The notes under the pieces are model-generated. The model was not told where the DNA came from. It was given only the letters and a program-made list of their open reading frames with translations, and did no database searches. A DNA stretch of 63,974 nucleotides, filler included, from Octopus bimaculoides (lineage: Eukaryota): assembly GCF_001194135.2 (NCBI RefSeq). It is 8 parts of 8 records of this genome, joined end to end, with 100 filler letters (N's around TTAATTAATTAA, not from the genome) between each part and the next. Parts side by side here need not be neighbours in the genome. Positions count along the whole stretch, not along the records: positions 1 to 19,356 come from NC_068981.1; 7 more parts are not named here. One strand, written 5' to 3'. Both the position numbers and the translations under genes were made by a program. Each line of letters starts with the position of its first letter. The stretch's first letter is position 1. This document shows positions 693 to 23,635 of this stretch, piece after piece.

Positions 693-790
693 AGGTGTCG
701 ACTACCGAAGGACGATTGGGTTGTTCTGAAGTTCTGTTTGAGAATTCTGGGAGTGCACGGACTCTTGCAGTTGAGCCAGATAGATTAGGA
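693..790 (+). CDS. RNF123: RNF123 coding exon A ([33 protein letters not shown])
   Basis: Polypyrimidine tract plus CAG acceptor at 690-692, GTGAGT donor at 791, phase 0 end fits exon B. Start could alternatively be 695 (tandem AG). Confidence 0.75.
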
Positions 791-1390
791 GTGAGTGTAT
801 TATAGATATTGTTGTTTGTGATTCAATGAACAATCATCAGTGTGTGTGTGTGTGTGTGCATGTGTGCATTTGTGTGTGTGTGTGTGTGTGATATTGTCCT
901 ATCGTAATCACTGCAGCCACTTGACACTAACAGAGCCACAAACTACAAACAAAGAGGATTGATAGAAAGGCACTGAGTTGATTGGATGATTAATAAATGG
1001 TGTGATATCTCACTGCTCTGATAATTTACTTCAACTTAATCAAAACAATCAGATTGGAGAAAGACAAAAAGACATGGCTTTATTGGAAACCTCCCCCCAA
1101 CAATTTGAGAGAAAAAACAACAAACTAAAGACAATAACAAGGAATTGTTATTTCAAAATTGGTTTATGATTGCATGAATAGTCTGAGTTCTCAAATGAAA
1201 CCATCCTTTTGTATTGTCTTTGACAGGCGCAGGAGTGGCTGTGTGGTAAGTAGCTTGCTTACCAACCACATAGTTCTGGGTTCAGTCCCACTGCGTGGCA
1301 CCTTGGGCAAGTGTCTTCTACTATAGCCTCGGGCCGACCAAAGCCTTGTGAGTGGATTTGGTAGACAGAAACTGAAAGAAGCCCGTTGTG

Positions 1391-1425: not shown

Positions 1426-4400
1426 ATATGTTTGTGTCTGTGTTTGTCCCCACAACTTCGCTTGATAACTGAGGCTGGTGAGTTTACGTCTCCATAACTT
1501 AGCAGTTCAGCAAAAAGAGAACAATAGAATAAGTACTAGGCTTACAAAGAATAAGTCCTGGGGTCGATTTGCTCGACTAAAAAGCGGTGCCCCAGCATGG
1601 CCGCAGTTAAATGACTGAAACAAGTAAAAGATTAAAAGAGATAAGTGCAGGCATGGCTTTGTGGTAAGAAGTTCGCTTCCTAACCACATGGTTCTTGGTT
1701 CAGTCCCACTGCATGGCACCTTGGCCAAGTGTCTTCTTGTAAAATAGTGGTTCCCAAACTTGGTGGTATTGCCCTCCCCCTGGATGTGATGGAAAGTTCC
1801 AAGGGGGCATTGAAGAAAAGTGGGGTGATAATGGGGTAGCGAATCAGGTAAAAACAACAAAATAATGGGTTCATTAGGTTAAGTTTTATTTGTGAAATAC
1901 AGTTGCTTTGAATTGGCTTCAGAAAGAGGTGGTTAGTTGGGGCGGGGGTGCTAGGAATGTAGCCTCAGTGTCAAGGGGGCGGTAGCCCAATAAAGTTTGG
2001 GAACTACTGTTCTTAAAGCCTCTGACCGTCTTGCAATTCTGCCAGCTTGCCACCTTTATATAACAGTGGTTTCTTATTCACATCTCTTTTTGCCAAATTG
2101 ATAAGTTAGAGAAACATAAACAAACTAACACCGGTTTTCATGCAGTGGCGGTGGTGGTGGTGGGGGGATGAACACAAACACTGATTTAGGTCCAAGGCCG
2201 GTAATTTTGAGGCGAGGATGTTAATTGATACTATTGACCCCAGTAAATCACTGGTATTTTAAGTCTATTGTGATTACAGGTTGGTGTATATATAATGTTA
2301 TATACGGTCAGTGCTTCATTACCCTTACAATTATTTTAATTTTTATTAGGGTTAGGGTTAGGGGTCTTTGCGAACGGGTATTATTCATTTATTATTTATG
2401 GGGAATGTTAATGTATATTGGATTTTTGGTTTATTATTGGCTTTTTTAGTAAAATTACCTATTTATTTTTTCATTTGTGATTACCTAAAGCTCATGTAGA
2501 GGCTCTGATTTCAGGATCAATAATTTTGGCCAGAGTATTATTAAAGTTGGAGCGGTTATGGAGTTATACGATTAATAGGATTGTTTAAATTTTGGGGGTA
2601 GAGATTATATAATTACATTGATAGTTGTTTGTTTATGAGGAGGGTTATTGACTTCTGGCGAAATTGACCATCATGAAATTTGAACTTAGGGAGTTGAGGC
2701 AAATATAGCAAAGCATTTTTCCAACACTCTAACAATTCTGCCTGCTTGCTGCCTTTAATAATCATTTCTAATTTAGGAACAATGCCAGCAGTTTTGAGAT
2801 GTGAGAGAGAGAGAGTTAGTGGATAGCATCAACACCCTCAGTACTAAACTGCTACTTTATTTTATCAACCCCACTGGGATGAAAAACTGTCAACTTTGGC
2901 AGGATTTGAACTCAGAAACATAAAGAGGTGGAACAGATATCACAAAGCATTTCATCTGACCCTCTAATGATTCTGCCAGAATCCACCTTCATAAAATAAC
3001 AGTTGCTAATTTAGGTGCAAGACCAGCGACTTCGAGAGGCAAGGTTTCCTGATACTGTCAGCCGCAGTACTTGGTTAGTCTCCATTACTCCCTAAGGAGT
3101 ATAGTCCTGGTTCCCAGGTTTCTCTGACATATATTATTCCTCCCTGGACTGGACACTGGTCAGTCGCTTGATTACTCATTTTCCCCAGCTGAGTGGACTA
3201 GAGTAATGTGAAATGAAGTGTGTTGCTCAAGAGCATCATCTGGTCCAGGAATTGAAACCACAATCTTATGATGATGAATCCTGCTCCCTAACCACTAAGC
3301 CATGTACCTCCACACCCCAGTACTTGACTGGTACTTTAGTTTATTAAGTTCAGAGGGATGAACTCAGAACACCAGGAGCTAGGACAAATAACATATGGCA
3401 CTTTTACCAATGCTCTAATGATTCTACGAGCTTGACACTTTAATTTATAGAGATATGCTTGTTTGTCTTGCAAATTACTTGGCAACCTCACTATTGCTGG
3501 TGCCGTGTAAAAAAGCCCCCGTCCCAGTCCACTCTGTTAAGTGGTTGGCATTAGGAAGGGCATCCAGCTATATGAGCCATACAAAAGCCGACATTGGAGC
3601 TTAATGTAGTGCTCCTGCTTGTTGGATTCTGTCAAACTGTCTCATCCATGTCTGCAAGGAAGACAGATGTTCAATGAGGACGATGATGATGATGATGAGG
3701 TTGTGGGTGGTTATTTTAAAATTAACACCTTATAATTATGAACTCTAAATGTATTTTATTGATGAATGACTTTTGTCTTAAATAAACTGAGAATCTTGTT
3801 TTCTTTAACTACAGGTGTCAAGCCTAAGTAACTTCAGTTCAATTCGAGCAAACTGTTGTGTTTATAAAGGTAATAATTTTAATTATTATTATTATTATTA
3901 TTATTATTCTTGTATGTGTCTGTTTGAATGAGAAAAGGGAATATGAAAGTATATTAGATATCAAAGGATAAACTGTTGTCTTTGGTATTTTCTTTAAAAC
4001 AGTTGTTTAAATGTTATGGTTGTTTGATTAAGACAGGTTTGAAATGCTGAGTGCAGGCTATGACTAGGTATTGGTATGGCTGTGTGGTTGTTGAGTTCCC
4101 TTTGTCATCAAATGGTCTAAAGTTCTATTTCACTGTGTGACAACTTGAGCAAGTGGCTTCTACTGTGGCCTTGGGCTGACCACTGACTTCTGCATTGAAC
4201 TGATAGACAAACTGTTTGGAACCCCTACACTTCAGGGATGCAAATTAAGGATTTCTTCATAGAGTAACTGCTGCATTTGTTGATTATATAAACAGTTTGG
4301 CTGCTTATTTCTCTGGAGACACCTCTGATGAGAACACAATAAAGTTTGAAAATCAATTAAGGTCGTTCACTGGCACGTGAAAAAACATTCGAGCGAGGTT

Positions 4401-4637
4401 GTTGCCAGTGCCACTGGACTGACTCCTGTGCAGGCGGCACGTAAAAAACACCATTTTGAGCATGGCTATTGCCAGTACCGCCTGAGTGGCGCCTTTTAGT
4501 CGAGCAAATCAACCCCAGGACTTATTATTTGTAATCCTAGTATTTATGCTATCAGTCTTTTTTGCTGAACTGCTAGGTTACGGGGACATAAACACACTAT
4601 GTTGGGGGGACAAATACAGACATACAAACATATATTA

Positions 4638-4690
<53 letters not shown>

Positions 4691-7600
4691 CAACGGGCTT
4701 CTTTTAGTTTCCGTCTACCATATCCACTGACAAGGTTTTGGTCTGCCCGAGGCTATAGTAGAAGACACTTGCCCAAGGTGCCATGCAGTGGGACTGAACC
4801 TGGAACCATGTGGTTGATAAGCAAGCTACTTACCACACAGCCATTCCTGTGCCTATATAGAAAACAGTTATTTTATTCCACACAGGAATATAGGAAAAAT
4901 AGAAGTTCAAAATGCACTGAGAATAATTCAAATATTTTTTATTAATATAATTAAAGCTTTAACTGGTTTCACAATTTACACTGATTTTCAAAAAGTTGAA
5001 ATAGAAAGATGCAGCTTATGTCACAAATGAGTTAAATGTCTAAACAACAAGAAAAAATGGAAAACAGGAAAGGTAAACACAGAGAAAGGACCCTTCATCC
5101 GTTGTCGGCTGTCTATCTACTCCTCATTTTGAGCATTCAATGACAATATGAGTCTTCAAAGACGGTTGCCCCCATAAATTCTAAAATAGAATTTAGGATT
5201 TATGAAGGGTCAAAGTTGGGAACAAAGACATGACAGTAGACACATACAAGGAAACCGAACGGAAACAAACATGGAGGATCGTTGGACCAGAACGAGAGGA
5301 AAATAGTGAATGCTGGGAGAAATATTTTCTTTGAAAAGAGAAAAGGTAGATGAGAGAGAAAAATATCGTCCACTCTTTTGAATGTCCGTGCAGGAAAAGA
5401 AAGATGGTCACATGAGGAAAAGAAAGATGGAGGTAGTATATATATATATATATATATATAGGTCCCTTTCATTCTTTTCTTGTCTTACCATTTTTATCAA
5501 TATATATATATATATATATATATATANNNNNNNNNNNNNNNNNNNNNNNNNNNNNNNNNNNNNNNNNNNNNNNNNNNNNNNNNNNNNNNNNNNNNNNNNN
5601 NNNNNNNNNNNNNNNNNNNNNNNNNNNNNNNNNNNNNNNNNNNNNNNNNNNNNNNNNNNNNNNNNNNNNNNNNNNNNNNCCTGACTGGCCTTCGTGCCGG
5701 TGGCACGTAAAAGCACCCACTACACTCTCAGAGTGGTTGGCGTTAGGAAGGGCATCCAGCTGTAGAAACTCTCCCAAATCAGATTGGAGCTTGGTGTAGC
5801 CATCTGGTTCACCAGTCCTCAGTCATATCGTCCAACCCATGCTAGCATGGAAAGCGGACGTTAAACAATGATGATGATACACACACACACACACACACAC
5901 ACATACCTGGCACTCCATCAGTTGTGATGATGGAATAACTGTCTCTTGAAATTAATGTGCAAGTGGCTGAGCACTCCACAAATACTTGTACCCTCAATAT
6001 AGCTCTCAGGGAGATTCAGCTTGGTACTGAATGTGACAAGGCTGGCCCCTTGAAATACAGGTACAACTCATTCTTACCAGCTGAGTGGACTGGAGCAGCA
6101 TGAAATAAAATGTCTTACTCAAGGACCCAGGTATTGCCAGGTATTGAACTCGTGACCTTACAGTCATGAGCCAAAAGAATCAAACCACTTAGCTATGTGC
6201 CTTCACTAAGACTAAATTTTGTCTAAAGATTTTCTATGCCAGACCCTCACAAATCAGAAGGTTCACCTATCACTCCAAAACAGCCCCTGTTATCATTTCA
6301 GTGTACAGATTCATGATCACTAACTAATTAGCCAGAAATAGCAGTCAAATCTTCCTCAAATCACACTCTCCTACCTTAAAACTGGACTATGGCTGCAAAA
6401 GGTAGGGTGGTCATGGTAGGAACGTATTTCACCATATCTCTATTTGATTAAAGTTGACATGATACTAAAGAAGATACACAATTACCGATTGCTAACCAAT
6501 ATCTTTCCAAAACAAAATTAACCACGTACACCTCATTCCATTCTCCTCTTGGAGAAATATCTATGAAAGTGAAATGTCCATTTTTCTTCTTGCTTTAACC
6601 AAAATTATTCCAAAATGAATTTCTTTCAGGTAAATGGATCTACGAACTGATGCTGGGTTCAAAAGGTGTGATGCAGGTGGGCTGGTGTACCATAAATTGT
6701 CAGTTTTTTCAAGAGGCAAGTATTTTTTTTACCTTCTATTTCTTTCAGTCATTGAACTGTGGCCATGCTGGGGCACTAGTAGTCTTCCTCACATTCTACT
6801 CTATCGTTGTTTTTTTTCTTCTTTTGCCCTCTCTGTTATGTTACCCTCTGATCCTTTTTCTTTCATTATTCCTACAAATGTATAGAATATGACTTCATGC
6901 CACATTATATCTTACAGAATGGCGTTGGAGATACAATAGATTCTTATGCCTATGATGGTAACAGACTTTGCAAATGGAATGTCAAAACTCAACGGTATGG
7001 AGAGGTGTGTATATCATTAGGTTTCCATATTGAAATTTATGCTCTTAACTTTTCCCTAATAATTATTGTACATTCCTTTATTTATTTATTTTTTTTTTAA
7101 TATTCTTTTGAAAGATCAGGTGATAAACTGGAAGAATCATTAGCATACCAGACAAAATGCTTAGCGGCATTGCATCTGCCTTTACATTCTGAGTTCAAAT
7201 TCTTCCAAGGTGGACTTTGCCTTTCATCCTTTTTGGATTGATAAAATAAGTACTAGTTGAGCACTGAGGTCGATGTAATTGACTCCCCCACCACCTCCCC
7301 CAAAATTGCTGGCCTTGTGCCAAAATTTGAAACCAATATTCTTCTGAAAGATTAATTGCTGGTGGCACGTAAAAAGCGCCATTTGAGCATGGTTGTTGCA
7401 AGTGCCGCCTGATTGGCTCCCGTGCTGGTGGCATGTAAAAAGCATCATTCAAGCATGGTCGTTGCAAGTGCCGGTGGCACATAAAAGCACCCACTACACT
7501 CTTGGAGCAGTTGGCGGTTAGGAAGGGCATCCAGCTGTAGAAACTTTACCAAATCGGATTGGAGCCTGGTGCAGCCTTCTGGCTTGCCAGCCCACAGCCA

Positions 7601-10600
7601 AACCGTCCAACCCATGCCAGCATGGAAAGCGGATGTTAAACGACAATGATGATGATGATGATGATGATGACCATATTTGATGGCATAAAAGTTACACAGG
7701 CATATTAGACATGTCCCTTTGAACAGCATTTATTCAGGTAAACTCCCCCCCCCAAATTTTTAGTGCATTAAAGCATCTAATATTTAAAGTAGGTTTGCAT
7801 ACAGGGCCTTTTTCATTTGTTCCAGTCATTAGACTGCTGCCATGCTGGGGCACTGCCTTGAAGAATGTTTAGTCAAATGAATCGACTTCAGCACTTATTT
7901 TCTCGGTCTCTTTTACTGAACCACTAAGTTACAAGGGCATAAACACACCTACTCTGGTTGTCAAGCAGTGGTAGGGGATGAACATAGGCACAAAGAAATA
8001 TCCACATGCACACACACATGCACACACACACACACATATACGACAGGCTTCTTTCAGTTTCTGTCTACCAAATCCACTCATAAGGTTTTGGTTGGCCTGA
8101 GGCTATAGTAGAAGGCACTTGCCCAAGGTGTCATGCAATGGGATTGAACCCAGAACCCTATGGTTGGGAAGGAAGCTTCTTACCACACAGCCACACTTGG
8201 GGTGAATTTTTTTTTTTTGATACATTTTTTGGTGAGTGGGGGAAGAAGGGCATTTTATATACTTTTGAATATGGTATTAGGTGTTAATTCTTCATTATTA
8301 TTTGATGTCTGGGAAATGAATCAATCTCTCTGTCTCTCTCTCTCTTTCAGTCTTGGTTAACAGGTGATGTGATAAGTTGTGCAATAGACTGTGACAAAGG
8401 AACCATTACCTTTTTCCGGTATGTAATTCTTTAATTCCACTATTTTTGCTTCAAAACTATTTAAAAACTTTGCTTTTGTATTTGGTTTGCAAGATTCTTG
8501 ATGTAAATTCAAATGTTGAAACAAATCTTGTTGTGTCTTGGGAGGGTCAGTATGCCAATAATAATAATAAACACATGCACTGGTTCAATATCACCTCTTT
8601 ATTGTTAGTAAGTTAAATATCTCACCAACTAACTAATCGTTTGTTTAATGTGTTGGTTAGATAATCAATTGAGTGATTGTTTGTCAAAGTCCTTTTATTG
8701 CTATTCGCGATGTTTTGAATTCAATCCCACTTCGTGGCACATTGGGAAACTGTCTTCTACTACAGGCCCAGCTTGTGTCTAGCCCCCATGTCTCTTTTGA
8801 CATGGTTCTTACAGCTGGATACTCTTTGTAATGCCAACACTCTTTACAGAGTGCTTTGTTTCATGCCACTGGCACCAGTGAGGTCACCAAGTAATTCACA
8901 GGGCAAAAAAAAAAAAAGGACCCCTTGACTGAGTGGGGTTTTAGTAAAGTGGGAGGTGGCTTTATACCAGGTGTTGAGGGGTCAAACAAGTAAACGAGTA
9001 TATATATATAGTGCGTGTGTTTATTTGGCTATTCTGAACTATAACAATATCTGTTTGAAGACCCAGTTTCACATGAGGAATCTTGCAAAGCAAATGCATT
9101 TATATATAAACTGCTGAAGAACTTATATATATATGTGATTTTTGTTTTTAAATTCAGGAATGGGAAATGTCTTGGAGAGGCTTTCAATAATGTCAGATGT
9201 GGCCCAGGATATGCCTATTTCCCTGCTGTCAGTTTATCCATGTCGGAAAATGTTCGTGCTAATTTTGGGGCAATCCCTCTTAGATATCCTTTATGAATTG
9301 ATGTTTCTTGTCTGTCATTTATGTCAAATGAAATGTGTGTGTGTGTGTGTTTTTTGCTACTATGATATATGTGTGTGTGTATGTTCTTTTATTCATTGCA
9401 TGTCACCAAGCCTAGCATGTGTATTCATCCTGTCCCCCTTATGTTATATAGCTCTCTCTCTCTCTCTCTCTCTGTGATTGGAGAGAACACCCAACCAACC
9501 AGATTTACATTAGCTACTCTTCTATAGAAATACCTGGTCATAAAATAAGCATTAAAATGAAAATTTGGTAAATTCATAAATTGATGGGTTTGAGGAACTG
9601 TGTGGTTTTTGTTACAAGGACAACTAATTAGGACGCTGTTCTTGTATAAGAAGTTCTTGTGTTTGTTTAAACCCAGATCTGACATCATTAAGTACAGTAG
9701 ATGTATGATCAAAAGTATGCCAACCATGACCAATCCATCTGTTTGTATCTTTAGGACTACTATTGTCCTCTTTCTTTATGACTGTAGAGTGTGATCTGAA
9801 GGAATTTTGGTTCCTATATCTAACAGATTGAGGGGCTATTAAGAGGCTCCGTTCTTAGTTTGTCTGTACAAGACATTCTTGAAGAAGCTGAAATTTGAAA
9901 ACTTACATAGGCACAGGCGTGGCTGTGTGGTAAGAAGCTTGCTTCCAAACCACATGGTTCCAAGTTCAGCCCCACTGCATGGCACCTTCAGCAAATGTCT
10001 TCTACTATAGGTGCAGGAGTGGCCATATGGTAAGAAGCTTGCTTCCCAGCCACATGGTTCCAGGTTTAGTCCCACTGCATGGCCTCTTGGGCAAGTGTCT
10101 TCTACTATAGCCTTGGGTCAACCAAAGCTTTGTGAATGGATTTAGTAGTTGGAAACTGGAAGAAGCCCTTTGTGTATATATATATATATATATATGTATG
10201 TATATGTTTGTGTGTCTGTGTTTGTCCCCCACCATCACTTGGTGGTGTGTTTACGTCCCTGTAACTTAGCGGTTCAGCAAAAGAAACCAATAGAATAAGT
10301 ACTAGGCTTACAAATTCTACTAAAGGCGGTGCTCCAGCATGGCCGCAGTCAAATGACAGAAACAAGTAAAAGGACAGTAATATTTGTTGCATTTATTTAG
10401 CAGTCCCAATTTATCTAGATCAATGATTCTCAACCATTTTTTACCTATGGACCCCTTCGATTACTATTTTATTCTTGTTGACCCCTTTCTCTAGCCAGTC
10501 AATGTTTAAAAACTAATTTTGTTGATAGTTCTTTCAAAATTCCTATTTTGTTTTCCATTCATTTAACTTGTGTCAGTTGGACTATGTAAAACATTAGAGA

Positions 10601-12222
10601 AAGAAACCTTGCAGTTTCTTGCAATAAATACATCTAAAGCAACATTTTTATGGGCCCTTAAAATGATATTGTGGACCCAATTTATCATTTTGCTTATGTG
10701 GACCCCTAAAAATTTCATATGGATCCCAGTTGAGAACTACTGATCTTAGTAAAGATCTAACTAGTTCAGGGTACTACTTTTGCTAACATATATTGATTCT
10801 GTATTTAAAAGTATCTTTCAAGTGTTGGGCCTCATAGAGAGAAAGTGCTTGAGTGTTGGGCCTCATAGAAGCAAAGTGGCTGAGTTCCTTTCGAGCTTTG
10901 AGCCTCGTGGAGGCAAAATGCTTGAGTGTTGGGCCTCATGGAAGCAAAGTGGCTGAGTTCCTTTCGAGCGTTGGGCCTCATGGAGGCAAAATGCTTGAGT
11001 GTTGGGCCTCATGGAGGCGAAGTGGCTCAGTTCCTTTTGAGCATCGGGCCTCATCAAGGCTAAATGACAGTTACTTTCGAGTGTTGGGCCTCATGAAGGC
11101 ATTGACCAAGACCTTTGGCATTATGTTGTGCTTAAGAAGACCCATCAATCTTTGTTCTCCACTTTTTGTATTTAATTTCTTTGTTTTCTTTGTGGCTATC
11201 TGTAACTACAGAATTTTTTATTTATTTATTTATTTTTTTTAAATACTGAGTTTATATTTTATTAGAGAAGCCACTAATTATGAGAGCATTTATCTTCTAA
11301 TCCTTCCTTGACAATAATGAATATATCAGGTTGAAGGATACAAACCTCTGCAAGATCCTCCACATTTAGATCTTGTCCAAGCCCAAATTTTGTTCTGTTA
11401 TTTAGAAAATTTGTTACCTGTCATGGTTGAAGAGGAGGTAAGTTCTTTTTATGTTTTTTAAATACAAAGTTATTAAAAAATAATCTTTCTCTATTTAATC
11501 AACCATATTTCTTCTTTATCAATTAATACCCCCCCNNNNNNNNNNCCGCCATATTCTTTTGTGCCTAATTTTCTGTGCCAGTCTGGATTTTGTAGTTCAC
11601 AGGTTCCTATCACTAATTATACATTTCCAAATGATTTGCTAGAGTAAGACTTTCCACAGTCAGGTTAACCCCACTTTTTAATGGTAGTTGCTGAACTGTG
11701 AAATGTGATAACATTCCTATGAAAATATTCCCATAAACACACAAGTTAAAATCTGTTATATGCAGTATTAGATTAACATAGCAACTTATGTACCATACTT
11801 AATGTAAATGTGAAGGGACATGGCCTAATAGTTAGGGTGTTGCACTCACGGTCACTAGATCATGGTTTCAATTTCCAGACTGAGCAGCACATTGTGTCCT
11901 TGAGCAAAACACTTCATTTCACATTGCTCCAGTCCACTCACTTGTGAATAGGTTCACCCTGCAACGAACTGGTCTCCTGGGACTAGCTTTCCAATCAGGA
12001 GGAATGTTGACTTGCTTGTCCAGCCATCATTCAAGAGCTAAAAATGATGTGAAGTGCATTGTGACCAGCGATGTACAACAACATCCAGTAGTCTGGTCAG
12101 TCACATGATCACTTAATATAAATACATTGTGATAGGCAAAATTTATTGTGGGATTCCTCCAGAGGTAATATCTTCTGCATTATGTTCAAAGCATAATATG
12201 AATATATATGTATGTGTGTGTG

Positions 12223-12254
<32 letters not shown>

Positions 12255-12260
12255 TGTATG

Positions 12261-12347
<87 letters not shown>

Positions 12348-15300
12348 TCACACAAAGGGGTTTGTATGATTGTGTATAGAAGAATATATTACTCAAAGGA
12401 ATTCCAACTCTGTCTGTTTTTCACGTTTTATTTATAATCTTATAATATTGATATAAGATATAAAAATAATATAGTAAAAAGAAATGAAATGAAGTATTAA
12501 TTGTCTATTCTTATTGAACAAATGAAATATTAAATGTCTATTCTTATTGAACTCGTATACTTTCTTGCATTTATGCAATCTTCAGGTTCATATGATGGTG
12601 GTAACAGTCGTGGTCATTGGTTTCAACTGTGGTTGACTGGTTAAATTTTGTCCTTTACATACATTCCTGTGGATAGAAGTAGTAGTTGCTTGGCTATTTT
12701 TTTTAGAAATGATGCCATTCCATTTTCAGTGTTTATTTTTAGAAATGATAACAGCAGTACTTTTTAGAGATTTTTATTTTTTAGATATGGGATAAGACTT
12801 TAAAACTTTAAATAAGATTATTTTTTATCATTGTTTATTAAACTTTGGTCTGAATTATAAAGTCCTTTTCTCTCGATTTCATTCGGATTGTATAGTTTAT
12901 GAAATGGAAGTATTATAAATGTTTTCCGGCCACATGTTGCTAGGGGGTTACTCAGCGATATTTGGCGGACTTCTGGATTTTTAATTTGTTGTCAGTGCAC
13001 ACATTTAAGGTTTAACAGTCTTATCCCCATACCTAAAAAATAAAAATTTCTAAAAAGGTACTGCTGTCATGATTTCTAAAAATAAACACTGAAATTGCAG
13101 ATTTCCAATTTATATATATGAGGGAGATGGACGTCATCCCAGCAGTGGCAAATGAAGATACTGGATGCATTTCTGCCTTATTAGGCACTATCAATAATGT
13201 CTATTCATTATCAGCATGCTTAGGTGGAAGCCATCACCACAGATCTTTTATCTGTTTTAGTCATTAAGGCTGGGGCCATGCTGGGGCACTGCCTTGAAGA
13301 GGTTTTAGTTGAATGCATCGACCCCAGTACTTTTTTCTTTTTAAAGCCTGGTACAGGTGCTTTTTATGTGGCACCAGCACAGGTGCTTTTTGACATGGCA
13401 CCAATGGCGTTACCAAATAGCTTGCAAGACAAAGATCTCTCAGCTGAGAGAGGGAATAGAACCGAGGGAAGTGGGTGTGAGCCAGGGGAGAGGTTAGAAT
13501 ATAATACATAGACAGAGACAGTTGTCTTATTATAGAAAGAATATTTTTACCAATTAAAACAAATCTTTTTGCAAATAATTAAGCACCTTCAATTCATTTA
13601 TTTATTCTTATTAAACATTGATGTCTTTGCTTTCTTTGTATTTCCATTTCTTCTAGTCTGAACGCAAATCCTGGTCTGCTGAGAAGAAAGATTTACAGCC
13701 TCCAGCCCTCGGTGATACTCGCAGCCGTCAATGCAATTTACTTCTAGTTGCTGCGCACTTGTTTAACAAACTTGCCACATTATTGGTTCGTTAAAAACTT
13801 TATTATTTTAATTGGTTAAAACTTATCTTTTTTTTAAAGTTGCAATCAGTTAAAAGATAAGAGATCCATTCTAAAGTTGCAGATGATGAAAAACCATGAT
13901 GGTTTGGTGGTCATTTGCTTCGTTATATCCATTGGAAAGCAAGAAATGATAAAGATTTGATTGATCCAAGCTGGCCATATCTAAGCTGGCCATATNNNNN
14001 NNNNNNNNNNNNNNNNNNNNNNNNNNNNNNNNNNNNNNNNNNNNNNNNNNNNNNNNNNNNNNNNNNNNNNNNNNNNNNNNNNNNNNNNNNNNNNNGGCCA
14101 TATCTAAGCTGGCCATGTCTGGCTCAAATATTATGACCACCGCCTTCGTGAAGGCAGAGGCAGAGGTATTGTTTACAGTCATGTTTGTTTGTCCGTGGAA
14201 AAGATATCTCAAGAACCGCTAGATGGATTCGAATGAAACTTTCAGGACTGTTTGGCCTTGTGACTGGCACATACTGATTAGATTTGGGGACCAATCCGGT
14301 ACCAGACAAGGATTCTGGATTATTTTTCCTGTTTTTTTTTTACTTAATTTTTGAGAGCAGTCAGGTTCATTTCAGAGTTTATTTCATTTAAAAAATAATC
14401 TCTGGCTAATCGTTAAGATGACATTGGTATTGCCTTGGTGGAGGTTTGCACTCTCTGAGTGCTCTTGTTCTACCTGTTTTAAGCTCCAACTAACCAGATC
14501 TCTCCTCTCACACCTACATTACAATGTCATTCGAAAAATATACAATCAGATCATCAAAATCTTGAAGCTACAAGATAATCCATGATTAATTCAAAACGAT
14601 GTGGATAAGTATTACATTTGACAGAGTAATCTGTATGCTGCAGAGTTTTAATCACTGTTTTTATTTCAATACTTCTTGAATTTTTGATTTCATCCATTAC
14701 TAATGTTTTCTATTTCAAATTTTAAACCATATTAAAATTTCTGTTGAAGCATATTCTGTTGTGTCTGGGGAGAGTCACTCTTTTAGTGCCTTATAATTTA
14801 ACACACTCACCAGTAAAGTTATTGAAAAGGTTACAAGACGCAATGAAACTTTTAGAAAAATGAATAAGTAAATGAGTGGAAACCTTACAGGTGAGTGTGT
14901 TAAATTATAAGGTTCCAAAAGAGAATGATTCTCCCCAGATACAACAGAATATGCTTCAACACATGAACTCCCTAAAAGAATCTTGCAAACCAAATCTCAA
15001 AATAAAATTTCTGTTGTTTATATAAAAAAAAAATCCAAAATGATATCAACTGAAATGTGTATTTAATGTTTATTTTTTTCTCATTTTCCTTTCTTCCACA
15101 GAAAAGTGCCTATATCGTAGAAGCTTGCCTCTTAAGGTTCATGTTAAAAGTTTGTGATGCTGAATCTTGCCTGTCTGAACAGCCATACATATCAAAATTA
15201 TTAGACACTATGTGGACACTTATGCAGGTTAATGTCATGGCGTTTTGATTGTTTTGTAAACTATTTTATAAACTATAGGCACAGGAGTGACTGTGTGGTT

Positions 15301-15412
15301 CCAGGTTCAGTCCCACTGCGTGGCACCTTGGACAAGTGTCTTCTATTATAGCCTTGGGCTGACCAAAGCCTCGTGAGTGGGTTTGGCAGATGGAAACTGA
15401 AACAAGCCTGTC

Positions 15413-15466
<54 letters not shown>

Positions 15467-18400
15467 CTGTGTTTGTCCCCCTCATCACTTGATAACCAAT
15501 GTTGGTGTGTTTATGTCTCTGTAACTAAGCAGCTTGGCAAAAAGACTGATAGAATAAGTACTAGGCTTACAAAAAATAAGTCCTGGGGTTGATTTGTTCA
15601 ACTAAAGGTGGTGCTCCAGCATGGCTGCAGTCAAATGACTGAAACAAGTAAAGAATAAAAGAAAAGAAAGAATATAGTTGTAGGCATTGCTGTGTGGTAA
15701 AGTAACTTGCTTCCCAACCACTTCATTCCATATCTGCCCAGTCTATTTAGCTGTAAATGAGGGCCAACTTAGTGCTACAGCCCTCTCTCAATCCATCATG
15801 TTTTCCATGCTAGCATGGGTTAAACAGGGAGATATTTGGGGACAGGATTTAACAGCCAAATGCTTTTCCTGTCACCAACCTTCACCTGTTTNNNNNNNNN
15901 NNNNNNNNNNNNNNNNNNNNNNNNNNNNNNNNNNNNNNNNNNNNNNNNNNNNNNNNNNNNNNNNNNNNNNNNNNNNNNNNNNNNNNNNNNNNNNNNNNNN
16001 NNNNNNNNNNNNNNNNNNNNNNNNNNNNNNNNNNNNNNNNNNNNNNNNNNNNNNNNNNNNNNNNNNNNNNNNNNNNNNNNNNNNNNNNNNNNNNNNNNNN
16101 NNNNNNNNNNNNNNNNNNNNNNNNNNNNNNNNNNNNNNNNNNNNNNNCAAATATAACAAAGAATTTAGTGAAATAACTTAGTTATCATTTAGTTAGTGTT
16201 AGGAACAAAAATTGTGACTAAGGTTTGGTGGAAGATTTTAATTCAAAACTTATGAAAACAAGACATTTGTACTACAGAGCCAGAGCTGGTTTCAGCTGGG
16301 TTGGTATCAAAAGGGTTAAGAATTGTTTCTTTATTACATATTTTAACCCTTTCGTTACTGTACTTATTTTGAGATGCTTTGTGTTTCTTTCAATTAATTT
16401 TAAAAATAACAAAGAATTTAGTAAAATAACTTAGTTATCATTCAGCTAGTGTTAGGAACATAAATTGTGACTAAGGTTTGGTGGAAGATTTTAATTCAGA
16501 ACTTATGAAAACAAAACATTTGTACTTCAGAGCCAGAGACAGTTTCAGCTGGGTTGGAAATCGAAAGGGTTAAAAGACAGTAGACAACAAGGACAGTGGT
16601 ACTTAATGCTATTTATGTTAATTTCTCCCATTCTTCCTTCTCCTATAAGTTTAGTGTTTTATGCTATAATCAATATTGATTGACTTTTGTTATAATTTCT
16701 TTTTTTTCTTTCCTAATATTGATTCCATTCTGTCACAATCAATTAGTTTGAGTCATACCTTATTGATCTGAGAAAAACAATGGGTAATGTCAGCTGTTGC
16801 TGGACTTGAATTCAAAAGTGCAGGAATGGCTGTTTGCTTAAGAAGATTGCTTCACACCTACACTGACTTAGGTTCCATCTCATTGCATGGCACCTTGGCT
16901 TTGTGTCTTCTACTGTAAGAGTGGCTCTCAACGGGGTGGGTGGGGTGCATGTAAGACTTTTCTGTTAAAATTTATGTACAATAAAATGGTTATACTTCCA
17001 CAATGCTCAAAATCATCATCATCATCATTTCATTTAACGTCCGCTTTCCATGCTGGCATGGGTTGGGCAGTTTGACTGAGAATTGGGAAGCCAGGGAGCT
17101 GTGCCAGATCCGATCTGATTTAGCAAGGTTTCTACGAATGGATACACTTCCTAACGCCAACCACTCCGAGAGTGTATTGGGTGCTTTTTATGTGCCACCA
17201 GCATCGGCCATGACTATGGTCTCACTTGGCTTAACAGGTCTACACAAGCACGGTATATTGCCAAAGGTCTTGGTCACCTGTCACTGCCTTCATGAGGCCC
17301 AACGCATGAACGGTGCTTTCTATGTGCCACCAGCACAGACAATTTATTTTACAAATCCTAATAATATTTAGTTATAAAAATGCAGTTGGATTTTTTTTAT
17401 ATATACATCGAATGTCTCTGAGGGTCCACCCAAGTAAAATAGGAACCAAGGTGAAAAAGGGTTGGGAACCACTGGGCTATACCCTTGGGTTAACCAATAC
17501 TGTGTGTAATTTGGTTGATGGAAACTACACAGAAGGCACAGGAGTAGCTGTGTGGTAAGAAGCTTGCTTCCCAACCACATTGTTCCAAGTTCAGCCCCAC
17601 TGGCTGGCACCTTGGGCAAGTATCTTTACTGTAGCCTTGGGCCAACCAAAGCCTTGTGAGTGGATTCAGTAGACGGAAACTGAAAGAAGCCTGTCATATA
17701 CATTTACACTTATATATATATGTATATGTTTGTGTGTCTGTGTTTACGTCCCTGTAACTTAGTGGTTCGGCAAAGAGACTAATAGAATAAATACTAGGCT
17801 TACAAAGAATAAGTCCTGGGATCTATCTGCTCGACTAAAGGTGGTGCTCCAGCATGGCCACAGTCAAATGATTGAAACAAGTAAAAGAGTAATCCTCCAA
17901 AAGTTTCTGTTCTAAGCTGCAGTTTGCCGTGTCCAATCACCTCTTGTAATATTGAGCCTCTCACTTCTACCCTGATCTCTTGTACCACCAAGCAATGGTG
18001 AGTAGAGTGTTTGTCTCAGCAATCGAGTTTCTCCTACTTCTTCGAAGTTCCATCATCATTAAAGTCTGCTCTCCATGCTGGTATGGGTTGGACAGTTTGA
18101 CGGGATCCGATTGGCCAAAGGATTCTACCAAGCTCCAATGTCTGCTCTGGCACGGTTTCTGCAACTGGACACTGTCCTTGGCACCAGCCACTGGGTGCAC
18201 TTTTTGTGGTACCAGCACAAGTGAGGTCACCGAGTAACTTGCAGCACAAGACCCCTTAACTGAGTTGGGGTTTAGTATTAAAGGGGGTGAAAGTATGATA
18301 GAGGGATAAGAACAGGAGACTTGCTGAAGAAGATACATGGCTTCCCCAGCTGGAAAGAGAAAGATGACCCTCAGGGTACAGGTTGAATATGAGAGAGAGA

Positions 18401-19021
18401 GAGAGAGAGAGACCATGGGGATAAAGATACAGAAAAAATGGATGGGTAGGTTTACAAAAGGGTGAAAAGCATGTGACAGATGATTAGAGATGGATGCAGT
18501 GAATAGGGTACATGGGTGGAGGCATGGTCAGTGGAGAAGGGAAGGAAACAGGAGTGGGTCAGGGAGGAGAAGGTGTTAAGTGACAATAATAGGGAATCGA
18601 CTTCAAGGACAAGGGAACAGAAGACACCATTGACCTGAGTGAGTAGCGCCATAGGTGAGTTGTGGGAGAAGACTTAATTGGTTTCATTGCGCCAAATCCC
18701 TTCTAAATTAGGGAGCCTGGCTTTTTCTTGTACAGTGTTGGTCCTGACCCTGTCTTTTAACATAATATCTACGATCTGACCTCATCATGCTATCTCCATA
18801 TCTTGTTTGTCTGTTCATAAAGGTGATATTTGTTTCAATGAGAGGTACTTATATGAAAAGCCAGTACTGTTTCTGTTTGCCATTCCAAGATTTAAAAAAT
18901 GAAAATGTATTTCTGTCCTTCATTTCAGGATTTTGAATTAAAAGCTTGTCTTGAAAATCTAATCATCACACTATTAACAGCTTATCGTTTTTCTCCAATA
19001 ACTGCCGACTTCAAATACCCA
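693..19021 (+). CDS. RNF123: RNF123/KPC1-like E3 ubiquitin ligase, partial multi-exon gene (10 coding exons, SPRY domain and downstream region; 5' and 3' exons absent)
   Basis: Ten exons splice in frame to 983 nt with no stop. Translation includes [90 protein letters not shown] and YRFSPI, which follows the vertebrate RNF123 sequence as recalled ([81 protein letters not shown]). Confidence 0.93.
1225..1641 (+). mobile_element. tRNA-derived SINE family A (CORE-like middle, internal (TA)n(TG)n), full length
   Basis: Head GGCGCAGGAGTGGCTGTGTGGTAAG..GGTTCAGTCCC, GGCACCTTGGGCAAGTG motif, tail CAGCATGGCCGCAG..TGACTGAAACAAGTAAAAGA; more than 14 copies in the window. Confidence 0.9.
1745..2009. mobile_element. 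hAT (Charlie-type) MITE nested in a SINE A head
   Basis: TIRs (T)AGTGGTTCCCAAACT and AGTTTGGGAACTACTG; the SINE head at 1645-1744 stops at the insertion. TSD is degenerate. Confidence 0.72.
3095..3310 (-). mobile_element. tRNA-derived SINE family C (V-SINE-like), partial
   Basis: Reverse complement of the head seen at 55004 (TGGCTTAGTGGTTAGGG...GGTTTCAATTCC...TTGAGCAACACACTTCATTTCAC..CCAGTCCACTCAGCTG). Confidence 0.7.
3480..3700 (+). mobile_element. SINE family B (GGTTGGCATTAGGAAGGGCATCCAG motif, (GAT)n tail)
   Basis: Shared motif and GATGATGAT tail with copies at 5680, 7355, 17010, 18040 and 19100; the motif resembles the MetaSINE domain as recalled. Confidence 0.75.
3815..3869 (+). CDS. 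RNF123: RNF123 coding exon B ([18 protein letters not shown])
   Basis: CAG acceptor 3812-3814, GTAATA donor 3870; phase 1 end joins GT of the next exon to give Gly. Confidence 0.92.
4490..4856 (-). mobile_element. SINE family A, near full length
   Basis: Reverse complement of the 1225 copy, with an internal (CA)n/(TA)n. Confidence 0.9.
5680..5880 (+). mobile_element. SINE family B, 3' part
   Basis: GGTTGGCGTTAGGAAGGGCATCCAGCTGTAGAAAC...GGACGTTAAACAATGATGATGA. Confidence 0.85.
5908..6205 (-). mobile_element. SINE with family C-type tRNA head and a distinct 3' part
   Basis: Head homology (CCAGCTGAGTGGACTGGAGC...GAACTCG); the segment GTGGCTGAGCACTCCAC..GTACCCT recurs near 27699 and 29766. Confidence 0.6.
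6630..6715 (+). CDS. RNF123: RNF123 coding exon C ([29 protein letters not shown]), ends at a GC donor
   Basis: TTTCAG acceptor; SPRY core motif; donor GAG|GCAAGT at 6716 is the only in-frame option. Confidence 0.92.
6716..6917 (+). other. GC-AG intron (202 nt) in RNF123
   Basis: AG|GCAAGT ... TACAG. The GT at 6720 would shift the frame. Confidence 0.88.
6918..7004 (+). CDS. RNF123: RNF123 coding exon D ([29 protein letters not shown])
   Basis: TACAG acceptor, GTGTGT donor 7005; SPRY G.GD...SYAYDG motif. Confidence 0.95.
7117..7340 (+). mobile_element. tRNA-derived SINE family D (GTCGACTTTGCCTTTCATCCTTTCGGGGTCGATAAA motif), CpG-decayed copy
   Basis: Homologous to copies at 28817, 32235, 42585, 42836 and 43685. 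Confidence 0.82.
7355..7670 (+). mobile_element. SINE family B with three internal GGTGGCAC-GTAAAAAG subrepeats
   Basis: Subrepeat starts at 7361, 7427 and 7473, then the family B core and (GAT)n tail. Confidence 0.85.
7810..8196 (-). mobile_element. SINE family A
   Basis: Reverse-complement homology over head, microsatellite and tail. Confidence 0.88.
8351..8418 (+). CDS. RNF123: RNF123 coding exon E ([22 protein letters not shown])
   Basis: Pyrimidine tract plus CAG, GTATGT donor 8419; SPRY W..GDVI.C.ID motif; phase 2 end. Confidence 0.95.
9158..9283 (+). CDS. RNF123: RNF123 coding exon F ([41 protein letters not shown]), ends at a U12 donor
   Basis: TTCAG acceptor; SPRY NG..LG.AF and YFPAVSL motifs; followed by ATATCCTTT. 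Confidence 0.93.
9908..10372 (+). mobile_element. SINE family A with a tandem duplicated head
   Basis: Head at about 9908-10010 immediately followed by a second head and a full body. Confidence 0.88.
10421..10742. mobile_element. hAT (Charlie-type) MITE
   Basis: TIRs CAATGATTCTCAAC and GTTGAGAACTACTG; left 8-bp flank ATCTAGAT fits the Charlie NTCTAGAN preference, right flank ATCTTAGT. Confidence 0.75.
10821..11135. repeat. Minisatellite with alternating 31/42-bp units (73-bp higher-order repeat), derived from a SINE segment
   Basis: G(G/A)GCCTC cores at 10827, 10858, 10900, 10931, 10973, 11004, 11046 and 11086; the end is the reverse complement of the single-copy segment at about 17240-17305. 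Confidence 0.9.
11323..11437 (+). CDS. RNF123: RNF123 coding exon G ([38 protein letters not shown])
   Basis: GY.PLQDPP motif; U12 branch site TTCCTTGAC upstream; GTAAGT donor 11438. The start is inferred from frame. Confidence 0.88.
11815..11990 (+). mobile_element. SINE family C (V-SINE-like), decayed
   Basis: tRNA-like head plus GTGTCCTTGAGCAAAACACTTCATTTCAC..CCAGTCCACTCA. Confidence 0.7.
12721..13096. mobile_element. MITE-like element with about 90-bp terminal inverted repeats
   Basis: 12721-12811 is the near reverse complement of 13005-13096 (CAGTGTTTATTTTTAGAAAT.. and ..ATTTCTAAAAATAAACACTG). Confidence 0.85.
13657..13785 (+). CDS. RNF123: RNF123 coding exon H ([43 protein letters not shown])
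   Basis: Long pyrimidine tract plus TAG, GT donor 13786, phase 0/0; [16 protein letters not shown] resembles recalled VLLTLAHIFHHFAPLL. Confidence 0.82.
13968..14117. repeat. 15-bp minisatellite (ATCTAAGCTGGCCAT)n spanning an N gap
   Basis: Two units left and two units right of the gap. Confidence 0.85.
14131..14469 (+). mobile_element. Helentron-associated non-autonomous element (HINE/DINE-1 type), complete
   Basis: 5' hairpin ACCACCGCCTTCGTGAAGGC..AGAGGT, 3' subterminal repeat CCTTGGTGGAGGT (14433-14445), perfect 3' stem-loop GCACTC-TCT-GAGTGC (14448-14462), T-rich ends. Confidence 0.75.
15102..15227 (+). CDS. RNF123: RNF123 coding exon I ([42 protein letters not shown])
   Basis: Pyrimidine tract plus CAG, GT donor 15228, phase 0/0; YIVEA and LLD.MW.LM match recalled YLVEA and VLDLLWLFME. 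Confidence 0.88.
15278..15660 (+). mobile_element. SINE family A (small deletion in head)
   Basis: Family homology and internal (TA)n(TG)n. Confidence 0.88.
16148..16315. mobile_element. piggyBac-type MITE, copy 1 (left end in gap)
   Basis: Ends AAAAGGG followed by TTAA; homologous to 16347-16569. Confidence 0.78.
16347..16569. mobile_element. piggyBac-type MITE, complete (223 bp)
   Basis: TTAA-CCCTTTCG ... CGAAAGGG-TTAA, i.e. TTAA TSD and CCC/GGG termini. Confidence 0.88.
17010..17345 (-). mobile_element. SINE family B
   Basis: (CAT)n tail at left, CTTCCTAACGCCAACC core. Confidence 0.85.
17536..17888 (+). mobile_element. SINE family A
   Basis: Family homology. Confidence 0.88.
18040..18300 (-). 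mobile_element. SINE family B, decayed
   Basis: CATCATCAT tail and CATGCTGGTATGGGTTGGACAG; segment shared with about 8790-8960. Confidence 0.65.
18929..19021 (+). CDS. RNF123: RNF123 coding exon J ([31 protein letters not shown])
   Basis: TTTCAG acceptor, GTAAGT donor 19022; matches recalled [25 protein letters not shown]. Confidence 0.92.
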
Positions 19022-19099
19022 GTAAGTTGTTTGTCGTTTTTTATTCCATTATTCTCAAAGAGTTTTAGATTTTGCAGATTATGCCAGGCTTATATATTC

Positions 19100-19356
19100 C
19101 TATTCATCATCATCATCATCATCATCGTTTAACGTCCGCTTTCCATGCTAGCATGGGTTGGACGATTTGACTGAGGACTGGTGAAACCGGATGGCAACAC
19201 CAGGCTCCAGTCCGATTTGGCAGAGTTTCTACAGCTGGATGCCCTTCCTAACGCCAACCACTCAGAGAGTGTAGTGGGTGCTTTTACGTGTCACCCGCAC
19301 GAAAACGGCCACGCTCGAAATGGTGTCTTTTATGTGCCACCCGCACAAGCCAGTCC
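19100..19356 (-). mobile_element. SINE family B, young copy truncated by the gap
   Basis: (CAT)n-CGTTTAACGTCCGCTTTCCATGCTAGCATGGG...CTTCCTAACGCCAACC; near-identical to the reverse complement of 5680-5880. Confidence 0.88.
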
Positions 19357-19456
19357 NNNNNNNNNNNNNNNNNNNNNNNNNNNNNNNNNNNNNNNNNNNN
19401 TTAATTAATTAANNNNNNNNNNNNNNNNNNNNNNNNNNNNNNNNNNNNNNNNNNNN
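19357..19456. other. Artificial assembly join N44-TTAATTAATTAA-N44 (1 of 7)
   Basis: Identical 100-nt structure also at 30553-30652, 46105-46204, 51324-51423, 59790-59889, 61461-61560 and 62738-62837. Confidence 0.95.
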
Positions 19457-19463
19457 TCCGTCC

Positions 19464-19501
<38 letters not shown>

Positions 19502-19836
19502 TTGCCTGTCTCTCTCCCTCCTCCTCTCTCTCTCCCTCCTCCTCTCTCTCTCCCTCCTCCTCTCTCTCTCCCTCCTCCTCTCTCTCTCACACGCACTCAC
19601 TGATACTTACATACATATGAATACGTCTGGGTTTGAGCTGCATGTGTGTGCGTGCGTGTGTGCGTGAAGGTGTGTGTGCACGTGTGCTTGTTTTGCCACC
19701 TCTCTCTCTCTCTCTCTCTCTATGTATGTATGTATGTATGTATGTATGTATGTATGTATCTATCTATCTATCTATCCACACACACACGCATTCGCGCGCA
19801 CAGATACATTCATTGTAATGCACATAGCACGCACAC

Positions 19837-19902
<66 letters not shown>

Positions 19903-19925
19903 CTACATATATATATATATATACA
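19457..19925. repeat. Compound microsatellite cluster (TCTG, CT/CCT, TATG, TCTA, CA, TA)
   Basis: Direct reading. Confidence 0.95.
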
Positions 19926-20095
19926 TACGATGGGCTTCTCTCAGTTTCCGTCTAGCTAATCCAGTCATAAGGCTTTGGTCGGCCCGAGGCTATAATAGCA
20001 GAAATAATTGCCCAAGATGCCACACAGTGGGACTGAAACCGGAACCATGTCGTTGTGAAACAAGCTTCTCACCACACAATAGCACCTGCGTCTAT
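19921..20095 (-). mobile_element. SINE family A, head half only, abutting a microsatellite
   Basis: Reverse complement of the head up to the internal (TA)n. Confidence 0.8.
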
Positions 20096-20624
20096 ATGTT
20101 ATTTTTCTTATATATATATATTTTTAACTTTCACTTTCGCTTTCACCTTATCTAGTTTCAGCTCATGAGCTGTGGCCATGCTGGGGCACCGCCATTATAT
20201 GCTGGGCTGTTATGAAGGTCGGATCGTTTATGACTGAGCAGACTTATGATCACAGACACTCCAGCCGTGACCATCCTATCTATTTACCACGATTCAATAC
20301 AAGCAGGATCACATTACTGAAGGTGTCTTCCCTTTTATAAAGATGTTAGTGCATTATCTGAGGGATATTTTGCAGCGCTTTTTTCAAAGTCGAGTGTCTT
20401 TGCATTTATCTATTTATTTATTTGTTGGCTTATTTGTTTGTTTATTTGTTAATTTATTTATTTGTTGATTTATTTGTTTCATTTTGACAGTTTCTGAGAA
20501 ATTTGTAAATGGACGGCAGACTCGCTTTAAACTGAATGTGGTCTAAGGGAGGTTACTCTGCATTAGATTGCTATGATTCCCGCGTCGCTGAGCATAAGAG
20601 CTTGGAAATCAGTGCACGTAAGCA

Positions 20625-20677
<53 letters not shown>

Positions 20678-20701
20678 NNNNNNNNNNNNNNNNNNNNNNN
20701 N

Positions 20702-20766
<65 letters not shown>

Positions 20767-20777
20767 GTAGGTAGGTA

Positions 20778-20905
20778 GTCCACTCAGCTGGCAAAAATGA
20801 GAAACGCTGCGATGGACTGGCGTCCCATCCAGCTGGGGGGAACACATACGCCATTGAAACCGGGAAACTCGTCCCATGAGCTTGGCTAGGCTTTAAAAAG
20901 GCGCA
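20778..20905 (+). mobile_element. SINE family C 3' part (V-domain-like)
   Basis: GTCCACTCAGCTGGCAAAAATGAG..CTGCGATGGACTGGCGTCCCATCCAG resembles the V-SINE domain as recalled. Confidence 0.65.
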
Positions 20906-20989
20906 TTTATTTTTTTCTGGTATTCGAGTACTATTTTTTCCACCTCGTTTCGCATTTATGTGCTTACTTTGGTATACTCCCTTTTTTAA

Positions 20990-21166
20990 AAATTTGTTTC
21001 AGTCCATGCTGGAGCACCACCTTTAGTCGAGCAAATCGACCCCAAAACTTATTCTTTGTAAACCTAGTACTTATTCTATCGGTCTCTTTTGCCGAACCGC
21101 CAAGTTACGGGGACGTAAACACACCAGCATCGGTTGTCAAGCGATGTTGCGGGGACAAACACAGGC
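20990..21166 (-). mobile_element. SINE family A, tail half
   Basis: CATGCTGGAGCACCACCTTTAGTCGAGCAAATCGACCCC... Confidence 0.85.
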
Positions 21167-22489
21167 ATTGTGTTTTGAAACAAAAGCAGTGAATGTTTAA
21201 CAGAAATACGGTAGCAAATCTATCACGCCCTAGTGTCTTAAATTCAAATCAGTATGACATAATTTACTTCGCCTATTCTCAGTCAAAGAAATAATTTCCA
21301 GTTATATGCTGGACCTAAATTTAATTGACAATACCTTTCAATTAGCAATATATAGCTTTTCTTTTGTGCTAATACATAATTTTATCATGAAAAATTGCAA
21401 CGGTAGATTAAATAAACAATAGATTTTATAAAGCTGGTTGAATGTCACGTAAAACGTTATAATTCTCACGTGAACCAAGCGATTTCATCCAATAGTTTCC
21501 TAAATTTCTTTTCGGGAAGACATTAAAACAACCAAATTAAAAATATTTACGTATAATTTGCAGGGGAAAAAACTCTGCAATGAATATTACACAAGGGAGA
21601 TAACTTGACATAATTTTATTGAAATTTAAATCGATTTTTCTTTGATATAGAAATTTATATACACATTACATTTTCATTATACCACAAGGTTCAAATGTAC
21701 ACCAGAAGTAGCTTCTTTTAGTTAGATGTATTGTACATTAAACCCAAAGTGGATATTTTTGTTCTGTACAAAGAAAAATTACAGAAAGAGAATAGCCATA
21801 AAATCGGCTTAATTATCAAAGATTTTTCAAATCTCATTTAGGAAAAGAATATTAGATAGGAACCAGATTTTTTATAATTTTATTTACATACAGCTTGTAT
21901 CACAATTTAGTAAAAAAAAAAAAAAAAAAAANNNNNNNNNNAAAAAAAAAAAAAAAGAAAAGAAAAAAACAGGGGATCGAGTTATTGACACGATGTGACC
22001 AACTGGCAGAATCGGCAAGTGTGTTGTGTAACCGTCCTGCTGTAATGCTTCCAGTAATCTGAGTTCAAATCTCGTTGAATTTAATTTTACCTTCCATGCT
22101 TTCATAGTCGACGACATAATATACCAATCCAGTAATGAAGTCATTTCTTCTTTCTTACTCCTTGAATCGTGCCTGTAATTCAGCGGTATGTATGTATTTA
22201 TACATACTGTATGTATGTGCAGATTTGTATGTTTTGTGTATGTATTCTCATGCATTTAGTTGCATATCTAGACATGCTCATATATACTTAAATGATAAAC
22301 TTCTGTGTAAGTTTTACAAATTTTTACGGTTCTAGTGATGGACTGGATCTGTAGTCTTCGAATTAGCTTTCTCCTTTCTGATTTTGAGAAGCCTAACTTC
22401 TTAAGATTGGTATTTAGACAGTGTTACATATCTCAGGGTCCCAATAATTACAGGTATAAAATTGAATTTGTAATCTGGATAGAGTAACT

Positions 22490-23595: not shown

Positions 23596-23635
<40 letters not shown>

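Follow-up and report, generated by a model that had tools for sequence, protein, structure and literature searches.

The window analysed here is a stretch of 63,974 nucleotides from Octopus bimaculoides. On its + strand, to which all positions below refer, it carries part of a gene that, by orthology and domain context, is RNF123/KPC1, a ubiquitin-ligase gene. Two exons of this gene, just past the SPRY domain, enclose an intron of 2039 nt (9284..11322) that has the signals of the U12-type (minor-spliceosome) class and termini that read AT-AT as assembled. The exon on its 5' side (9158..9283, 126 nt, ...NGKCLGEAF...NFGAIPLR) closes with the first two bases of an Arg codon (phase 2) and was also recovered by tblastn with mollusc, fish and arthropod RNF123. 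It is equal in length to the exon at 10117-10242 of L001, a 22.5-kb ENA contig (ERZ21867824, ctg74420l) found by protein search across the junction. The exon on the 3' side (11323..11437, 115 nt, (R)...VMVEEE) is followed by an ordinary GTAAGT donor, and its counterpart in L001 (13826-13940) also measures 115 nt.

At the upstream boundary the exon reads ...AATTTTGGGGCAATCCCTCTTAG up to 9283 and the intron starts with ATATCCTTTATG, which places CTTAG/ATATCCTTT at 9283/9284 (a slash marks a splice boundary throughout). The 5' splice site ATATCCTTT (9284..9292, AT subtype) matches the U12 consensus /RTATCCTT at nine of nine positions and occurs once in the window against 0.32 occurrences expected on both strands. 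Close to the other end lies the branch-point sequence TTCCTTGAC (11304..11312), which fits TCCTTRAC with its G as the R of the consensus. The core TCCTTGAC (11305-11312, 8/8 match) is the only TCCTTRAC in the window (1.3 expected). U12 introns are defined by the 5' splice site and the branch-point sequence, without a distinct pyrimidine tract, and the distance from branch point to 3' splice site is optimal at 11-13 nt (Turunen et al. 2013, PMC3584512); here a TCCTTRAY match stands near the 3' end and its branch A, at 11311, lies 11 nt before the intron end. The 10 nt between branch site and 3' end (AATAATGAAT) include only three pyrimidines and thus no distinct polypyrimidine tract, a soft hallmark of the class. 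The remaining introns of the window are all GT-AG with pyrimidine-rich acceptors; four of the five U2-type acceptors have 13-16 pyrimidines in the last 20 nt and the remaining one has 12. Because the donor and the branch motif each fall exactly where coding homology breaks, chance placement is not credible. The intron thus appears to fit all published U12 features (5' splice site, branch-point sequence, spacing, tract and termini), and on these signals 9284-11322 is confirmed as a U12-type intron with AT-AT termini as assembled.

On the acceptor side the window reads ...TAATCCTTCCTTGACAATAATGAAT/ATATCAGGTTGAAGGATACAAACCTCTGCAAGATCCTCCA, the intron tail ...AATAATGAAT running to 11322 and the exon starting with ATATCAGGTT from 11323. 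Joining 9283 to 11323 gives an in-frame R-Y-Q-V-E-G-Y product that reads on from NGKCLGEAF. Because ATATC is shared by the intron and exon starts, the junctions from 9283/11323 through 9288/11328 are sequence-equivalent. An earlier, sequence-only reading of this DNA had assigned the gene to RNF123, proposed the U12 type, the missing pyrimidine tract and this junction with its slide of up to 5 nt, and all of these points were borne out. It had also held 11322 to be the sole end that keeps frame, and this was slightly too strict: with the donor at 9283/9284 there are five in-frame, stop-free ends, namely AT-TG at 11319 (8 nt from the branch A), AT-AT at 11322 (11 nt), AT-TA at 11325 (14 nt), AT-CA at 11328 (17 nt) and AT-GT at 11331 (20 nt). 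What stands is that 11322 alone among them reproduces the junction and exon length of the ortholog. When distances of 10-15 nt from the branch A were enumerated, the conserved junction was found at distance 11 only. The two nearby dinucleotides that the same reading had said would break the frame do so. The AC at 11311-11312 ends a single nucleotide past the branch A and is out of frame: it stands 17 nt ahead of GTT at 11330, and an in-frame end needs a distance of 1 mod 3 to this codon. Ending at the AG at 11328-11329, 18 nt past the branch A, changes the frame and soon brings up a stop. The AT-AT subtype, putative in that it takes the termini as assembled, follows from a junction that the frame, the exon length and the ortholog together determine.

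The ortholog in L001 fixes this junction with a canonical AC. Its intron reads CTCAG/ATATCCTTTTTT ... TTACCTTAACAATGGGTTAC/ATATCAAGTTGAAGGATAT and ends ...ACCTTAACAATGGGTTAC/ATATCAAGTT, an AT-AC intron with the same junction and the same R-Y-Q-V-E-G-Y product as the window, and its branch site ACCTTAAC aligns with TTCCTTGAC at a spacing of 11 nt in both. The gene call on the contig (P0004, 93% identical to the query) continues past this donor into the intron, giving ...PLRYPFFFF. Six conserved blocks were detected by blastn between the window and L001; the refined exons have identical lengths in both (87/68/126/115/129/126 nt), and the other intron borders in both genomes are AG...GT with a pyrimidine-rich acceptor. 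Joined, the six exons form one open frame of 217 amino acids per genome, 91% identical, and open only with the junction 9283/11323. Within the intron the two sequences can be aligned only at the donor and at a CCTT[GA]ACAAT island; the upstream block covers the nine donor bases and ends at 9292, and the downstream block starts at 11323. Synonymous sites are saturated (proportion of differing synonymous sites, pS, 0.69), and the exons are under purifying selection, with a ratio of nonsynonymous to synonymous substitution rates (dN/dS) of about 0.03 upstream and downstream of the intron (about 0.025 for the downstream exons). The two species must therefore be deeply diverged and the intron islands kept by selection, and the constraint on both sides argues that in-frame splicing is needed. 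Since the canonical AC acceptor of L001 also gives R-Y-Q-V, Gln is probably the true residue in this lineage.

Outside the exons, three non-coding stretches of the window (4610-4692, 5868-5906 and 17711-17746) match L001 at 7826-8172 and 8313-8358 with 72-92% identity, some in reversed orientation, and the matched region of L001 is tandemly repeated. Because synonymous sites are saturated, these matches suggest a family of repeats or mobile elements common to both genomes.

The intron was then read directly at four further loci whose annotated fragments are broken, from Patella (limpet, L006), Potamilus (freshwater mussel, L007), Rangifer (reindeer, L008) and Oryzias (medaka, L009). In Patella the donor is CTCAG/ATATCCTTT, the stretch from branch site to 3' end CTCCTTAACAATTGTAAC and the next exon ATATCCAATAGAAGG; in Potamilus these are CTACA/ATATCCTTT, TTCCTTAACTTGGTGGAAC and ATATCCTGTGGAAGG; in Rangifer CTGCG/ATATCCTTT, GGCTTAACGCGGTGGTAC and CTACCCAGTGGCAGG; and in Oryzias CTCAG/ATATCCTCT, GACCCAC and ATACCCCGTAGAAGG. 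All five loci, L001 included, have ATATCC...AC introns at the same codon, so that the comparison of position and termini with mollusc and vertebrate RNF123 suggested by the sequence-only reading gave the same codon in all and AT-AC termini. The donor ATATCCTTT is identical in the window, L001, Patella, Potamilus and Rangifer. At the last intron base, five of five orthologs have C and the window has T (11322), its terminal dinucleotide (11321..11322) being AT where theirs is AC; this is the sole difference from the canonical terminus.

RNF123 is listed as a minor-intron gene in human and mouse in MIDB (Olthof et al. 2019, PMC6717393, Table S2), where the human intron has the 5' splice site GCG/ATATCATTT and the branch-point sequence GCTGGCTTAACT (PMC6717393). 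These signals plainly mark it as orthologous to the intron read in reindeer. The codon shared by molluscs and vertebrates, together with the MIDB entry, indicates that the intron is old and already catalogued, and dates it at least to the mollusc-vertebrate common ancestor. The human and mouse minor intron resembles that of the window in its gene, its place at the PLR/Y codon after the SPRY domain, its A-start U12 type and its branch site near the 3' end. The mammalian, fish, limpet and mussel copies that were read end in AC, whereas the window copy ends in AT; the window intron is 2039 nt long against about 370-430 nt in vertebrates, and the residue after Tyr is Gln in the window but Pro in vertebrates. 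Mammalian RNF123 has a second minor intron, of GT-AG type (mouse chr9:108067514-108068121, 5' splice site CCT/GTATCCTGT, branch-point sequence TCTTCCTTGACA; MIDB, PMC6717393, Table S2). No second U12-like donor was found on the + strand of the window, and any counterpart of this intron would lie outside it.

In four other contigs the two flanking exons are fused (L002 801-1205, L003 50-433, L004 340-582 and L005 213-455), as they also are in the proteins P0024, P0025 and P0027. The fused exons of the contigs read ...PL[RH]YP[LM]EGYRPLQD[PA]P... straight through, without the U12 intron, which suggests a lineage-specific loss; in L002 an upstream U2 intron is retained as in-frame read-through. 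In the mollusc-type genomes, the start of the intron repeats the start of the next exon: they share ATATC in the window (9284-9288 and 11323-11327) and in L001, ATATCC in Patella (L006 20981 and 21864) and ATATCCT in Potamilus (L007 27824 and 30969). Coding for (R)YP requires A-TAT-CCN at the exon start. The identity does not extend to vertebrates, whose exons start with CTACCC or ATACCC. Exons that follow U12 3' splice sites favour ATA as their first three bases (Sheth et al. 2006, PMC1557818). The identity in the mollusc-type genomes may have arisen by coincidence, through a preference in splicing or as a relic of how the intron originated.

AT-AT introns are an established minority among U12 introns, as the sequence-only reading had stated. 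U12 introns tolerate non-canonical termini, often at reduced efficiency (Turunen et al. 2013, PMC3584512). Of 671 human U12 introns, 469 are GT-AG, 169 AT-AC and 33 non-canonical, six of these last being AT-AT, and mouse has six AT-AT introns as well (Sheth et al. 2006, PMC1557818). AT-AT thus makes up 6/671 of the human set and 6/189, roughly 3%, of its A-start introns, and it is the second commonest non-canonical minor terminus in animals. Switches between AT-AC and AT-AT at orthologous positions of human and mouse are on record for ERCC5, Gpaa1, Zc3hdc6 and Slc9a8, one position each (PMC1557818). The documented AT-AT introns (human ERCC5; mouse Gpaa1, Slc9a8 and Zc3hdc6) share with the window intron a 5' site of consensus form (ATATCC) and a U12 branch-point sequence, and show a terminal C-to-T change while the ortholog of the other species stays AT-AC, the same pattern as the window against L001. 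These mammalian cases are backed by RefSeq transcripts, whereas the window intron is known from genomic sequence alone. Canonical AT-AC introns share all defining signals and the presumed mechanism with the window intron and differ from it in the last intron nucleotide only.

We consider it highly probable that the window intron is the local copy of the ancient RNF123/KPC1 U12 intron, with AT-AT termini, and is spliced at 11322/11323. From what is established for the minor spliceosome, the U11/U12 di-snRNP (small nuclear ribonucleoprotein) would recognise ATATCCTTT at the 5' splice site jointly with TTCCTTGAC at the branch point. The 3' cleavage would be set mainly by the 11-nt distance from the branch A, not by a pyrimidine tract and AG, with the cut after T 11322. 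The exon ending ...CTTAG would then be joined to ATATCAGG..., restoring the Arg codon of the conserved PLR/Y motif just past the SPRY domain. An Rfam scan of the window gave no match and there are no small nuclear RNA genes in it.

Several observations weigh against this account. A single-sequence search across the junction in a 5.8-billion-cluster protein collection yielded only four relatives, and no spliced product of this species or a close one was among them. When metagenome contigs were scanned for exact matches to the exon start ATATCARGTTGAAGGATA, 84 loci came up; none of them encodes exon 4, and all are chance matches. The assembly is a scaffolded draft with gaps (N runs at 5527-5679, 11536-11545, 13996-14095 and 15892-16147), the nearest of which lies 214 nt downstream of the acceptor, and a C-to-T base error or a minor allele is conceivable. 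The choice of 3' site in U12 introns is error-prone (Turunen et al. 2013, PMC3584512), and out-of-frame candidates are at hand in an AA at distance 10 and an AG at distance 18 from the branch A. These points feed two other explanations. The conserved intron could really be AT-AC, T 11322 reflecting a mistake in base calling or assembly, or else a minor allele of the sequenced individual: all five orthologs have C at the terminal position, the assembly is gapped, and neither search provided an independent copy of the locus from the same species. On the other hand, AT-AT makes up roughly 3% of A-start introns (6/189 in human, by our reckoning), a share that greatly exceeds the per-base error rate typical of a finished consensus, and for this reason a real substitution is likelier than a base error; moreover, the flanking bases carry no sign of low quality, the nearest gap is at a distance, and switches from AT-AC to AT-AT between orthologs are documented. 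We therefore regard an erroneous T as unlikely, though with an appreciable chance, and infer that T 11322 is real and 11322/11323 the junction used. Alternatively, in a genuine U12 intron the main 3' cleavage could have moved to the AA at 11320-11321 or the AG at 11328-11329, yielding frameshifted transcripts; RNF123 function would then be reduced or lost, or the splicing would be regulated and unproductive. In favour of this, neither AT-AA nor AT-AG is rarer than AT-AT among non-canonical U12 introns, the choice of 3' site is error-prone, and the AA and the AG stand 10 and 18 nt past the branch A. Both of them, however, shift the frame and meet stops about 5-13 codons past the junction, while the downstream exons are open, equal in length to those of L001 and constrained (dN/dS about 0.025), and in L001 a comparable AG (CAAG) follows 8 nt past the AC acceptor, a base further on than in the window, so that a nearby AG is not new to the lineage. 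A moved site is accordingly very improbable.

A milder form of the same idea is that a real C-to-T change loosens the choice of 3' site, a share of RNF123 pre-mRNA being cleaved at the AA (distance 10) or the AG (distance 18) and destroyed. We hold this to be improbable; if true, RNF123 output would be unusually sensitive to minor-spliceosome activity, and the non-canonical terminus would have a lineage-specific regulatory use. A join outside the U12 class was also considered, at 9290/11330 (TT-AG, complementary DNA ...AGATATCCTGTTGAAGG..., product ...PLRYPVEGY...). It is in frame and restores the Pro of vertebrate and other mollusc RNF123, but TT is no donor for either spliceosome, the equivalent join in L001 is out of frame (exon start ATATCAAGTT, AG one base later), and the canonical AC acceptor of L001 independently yields R-Y-Q-V. 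The join is scarcely credible and was rejected on the comparison with L001. In the literature, the supplement of the IAOD paper (PMC7367187) makes no mention of RNF123, and a search for RNF123 with U12 or minor introns gave only a WBP11-dependent retained RNF123 intron, not shown to be the same intron.

As to the identity of the gene, a profile search (alignment A2) gave RNF123/KPC1 for all of the best named relatives (scorpion, tick, fishes, hagfish and coral) and also matched a JGI entry named "Kip1 ubiquitination-promoting complex protein 1". Over the exon-3 region the closest named matches are from a bivalve and a gastropod (79% identity), and among named relatives the window sequence is, on this measure, nearest to molluscs. 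TPR_RNF123 and a RING finger follow downstream in the orthologous loci of Potamilus, Rangifer and Oryzias; the RING part of the gene falls outside the window. A sequence search of PDB returned no RNF123 chain and only SPRY-domain relatives (RyR, RanBP9/10 and DDX1).

Besides the two exons at the U12 intron, the window contains two SPRY-domain exons (6918..7004, 87 nt, and 8351..8418, 68 nt) and two downstream exons (13657..13785, 129 nt, and 15102..15227, 126 nt), all with AG...GT borders. Further exons are known approximately, as tblastn blocks: upstream at 698..802, at 3809..3871 and inside 6629..6733, and downstream at 18923..19030 (longest block). The exon inside 6629..6733 probably stops near 6712; the final residues of the block (EASIFFT) appear to be intron sequence that was read through. 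Two U2-type donors of the window are weaker than their counterparts in L001, GTTCGT against GTAAGT at 13786-13791 and GTTAAT against GTAAAT at 15228-15233. The U12 intron itself holds tandem repeats at 9907-10110 (100-bp unit, two copies, 84% match) and 10815-11100 (73-bp unit, 3.5 copies, also scored as 31-42-bp sub-units), and (TG)n and (TC)n microsatellites near 9338-9352 and 9455-9475.

Three public annotations divide RNF123 exactly at the U12 intron into a pair of gene models, a SPRY fragment followed by a model with TPR_RNF123 and RING: Potamilus (10001-27857 and 31069-37857), Rangifer (6001-11923 and 12159-17923) and Oryzias (8001-13403 and 13597-21403). The N-terminal reindeer model is also frameshifted past RYPF. 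Many annotated fragments stop or go wrong right past ...PLRYP[LF], among them those of Potamilus, Patella, Larimichthys, Oryzias, Channa, Myxine and Albula, and after PLRYP the models of Patella, Larimichthys, Channa, Myxine and Albula close with spurious read-through sequence. Such a pattern is what results from translation through the A/TAT CCT T.. donor. The expectation that gene predictors would truncate or mis-join the gene at this intron thus holds in other genomes. Both the intron, as an RNF123 minor intron, and its AT-AT variant are of known kinds, and no new question about splicing is raised. The main value of the finding is practical, as automatic annotation splits, truncates or frameshifts RNF123 at this intron from molluscs to mammals, and with the true junction known RNF123 can be modelled correctly in this genome. 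With the window, the known switch from AT-AC to AT-AT in a conserved U12 intron gains a protostome example.

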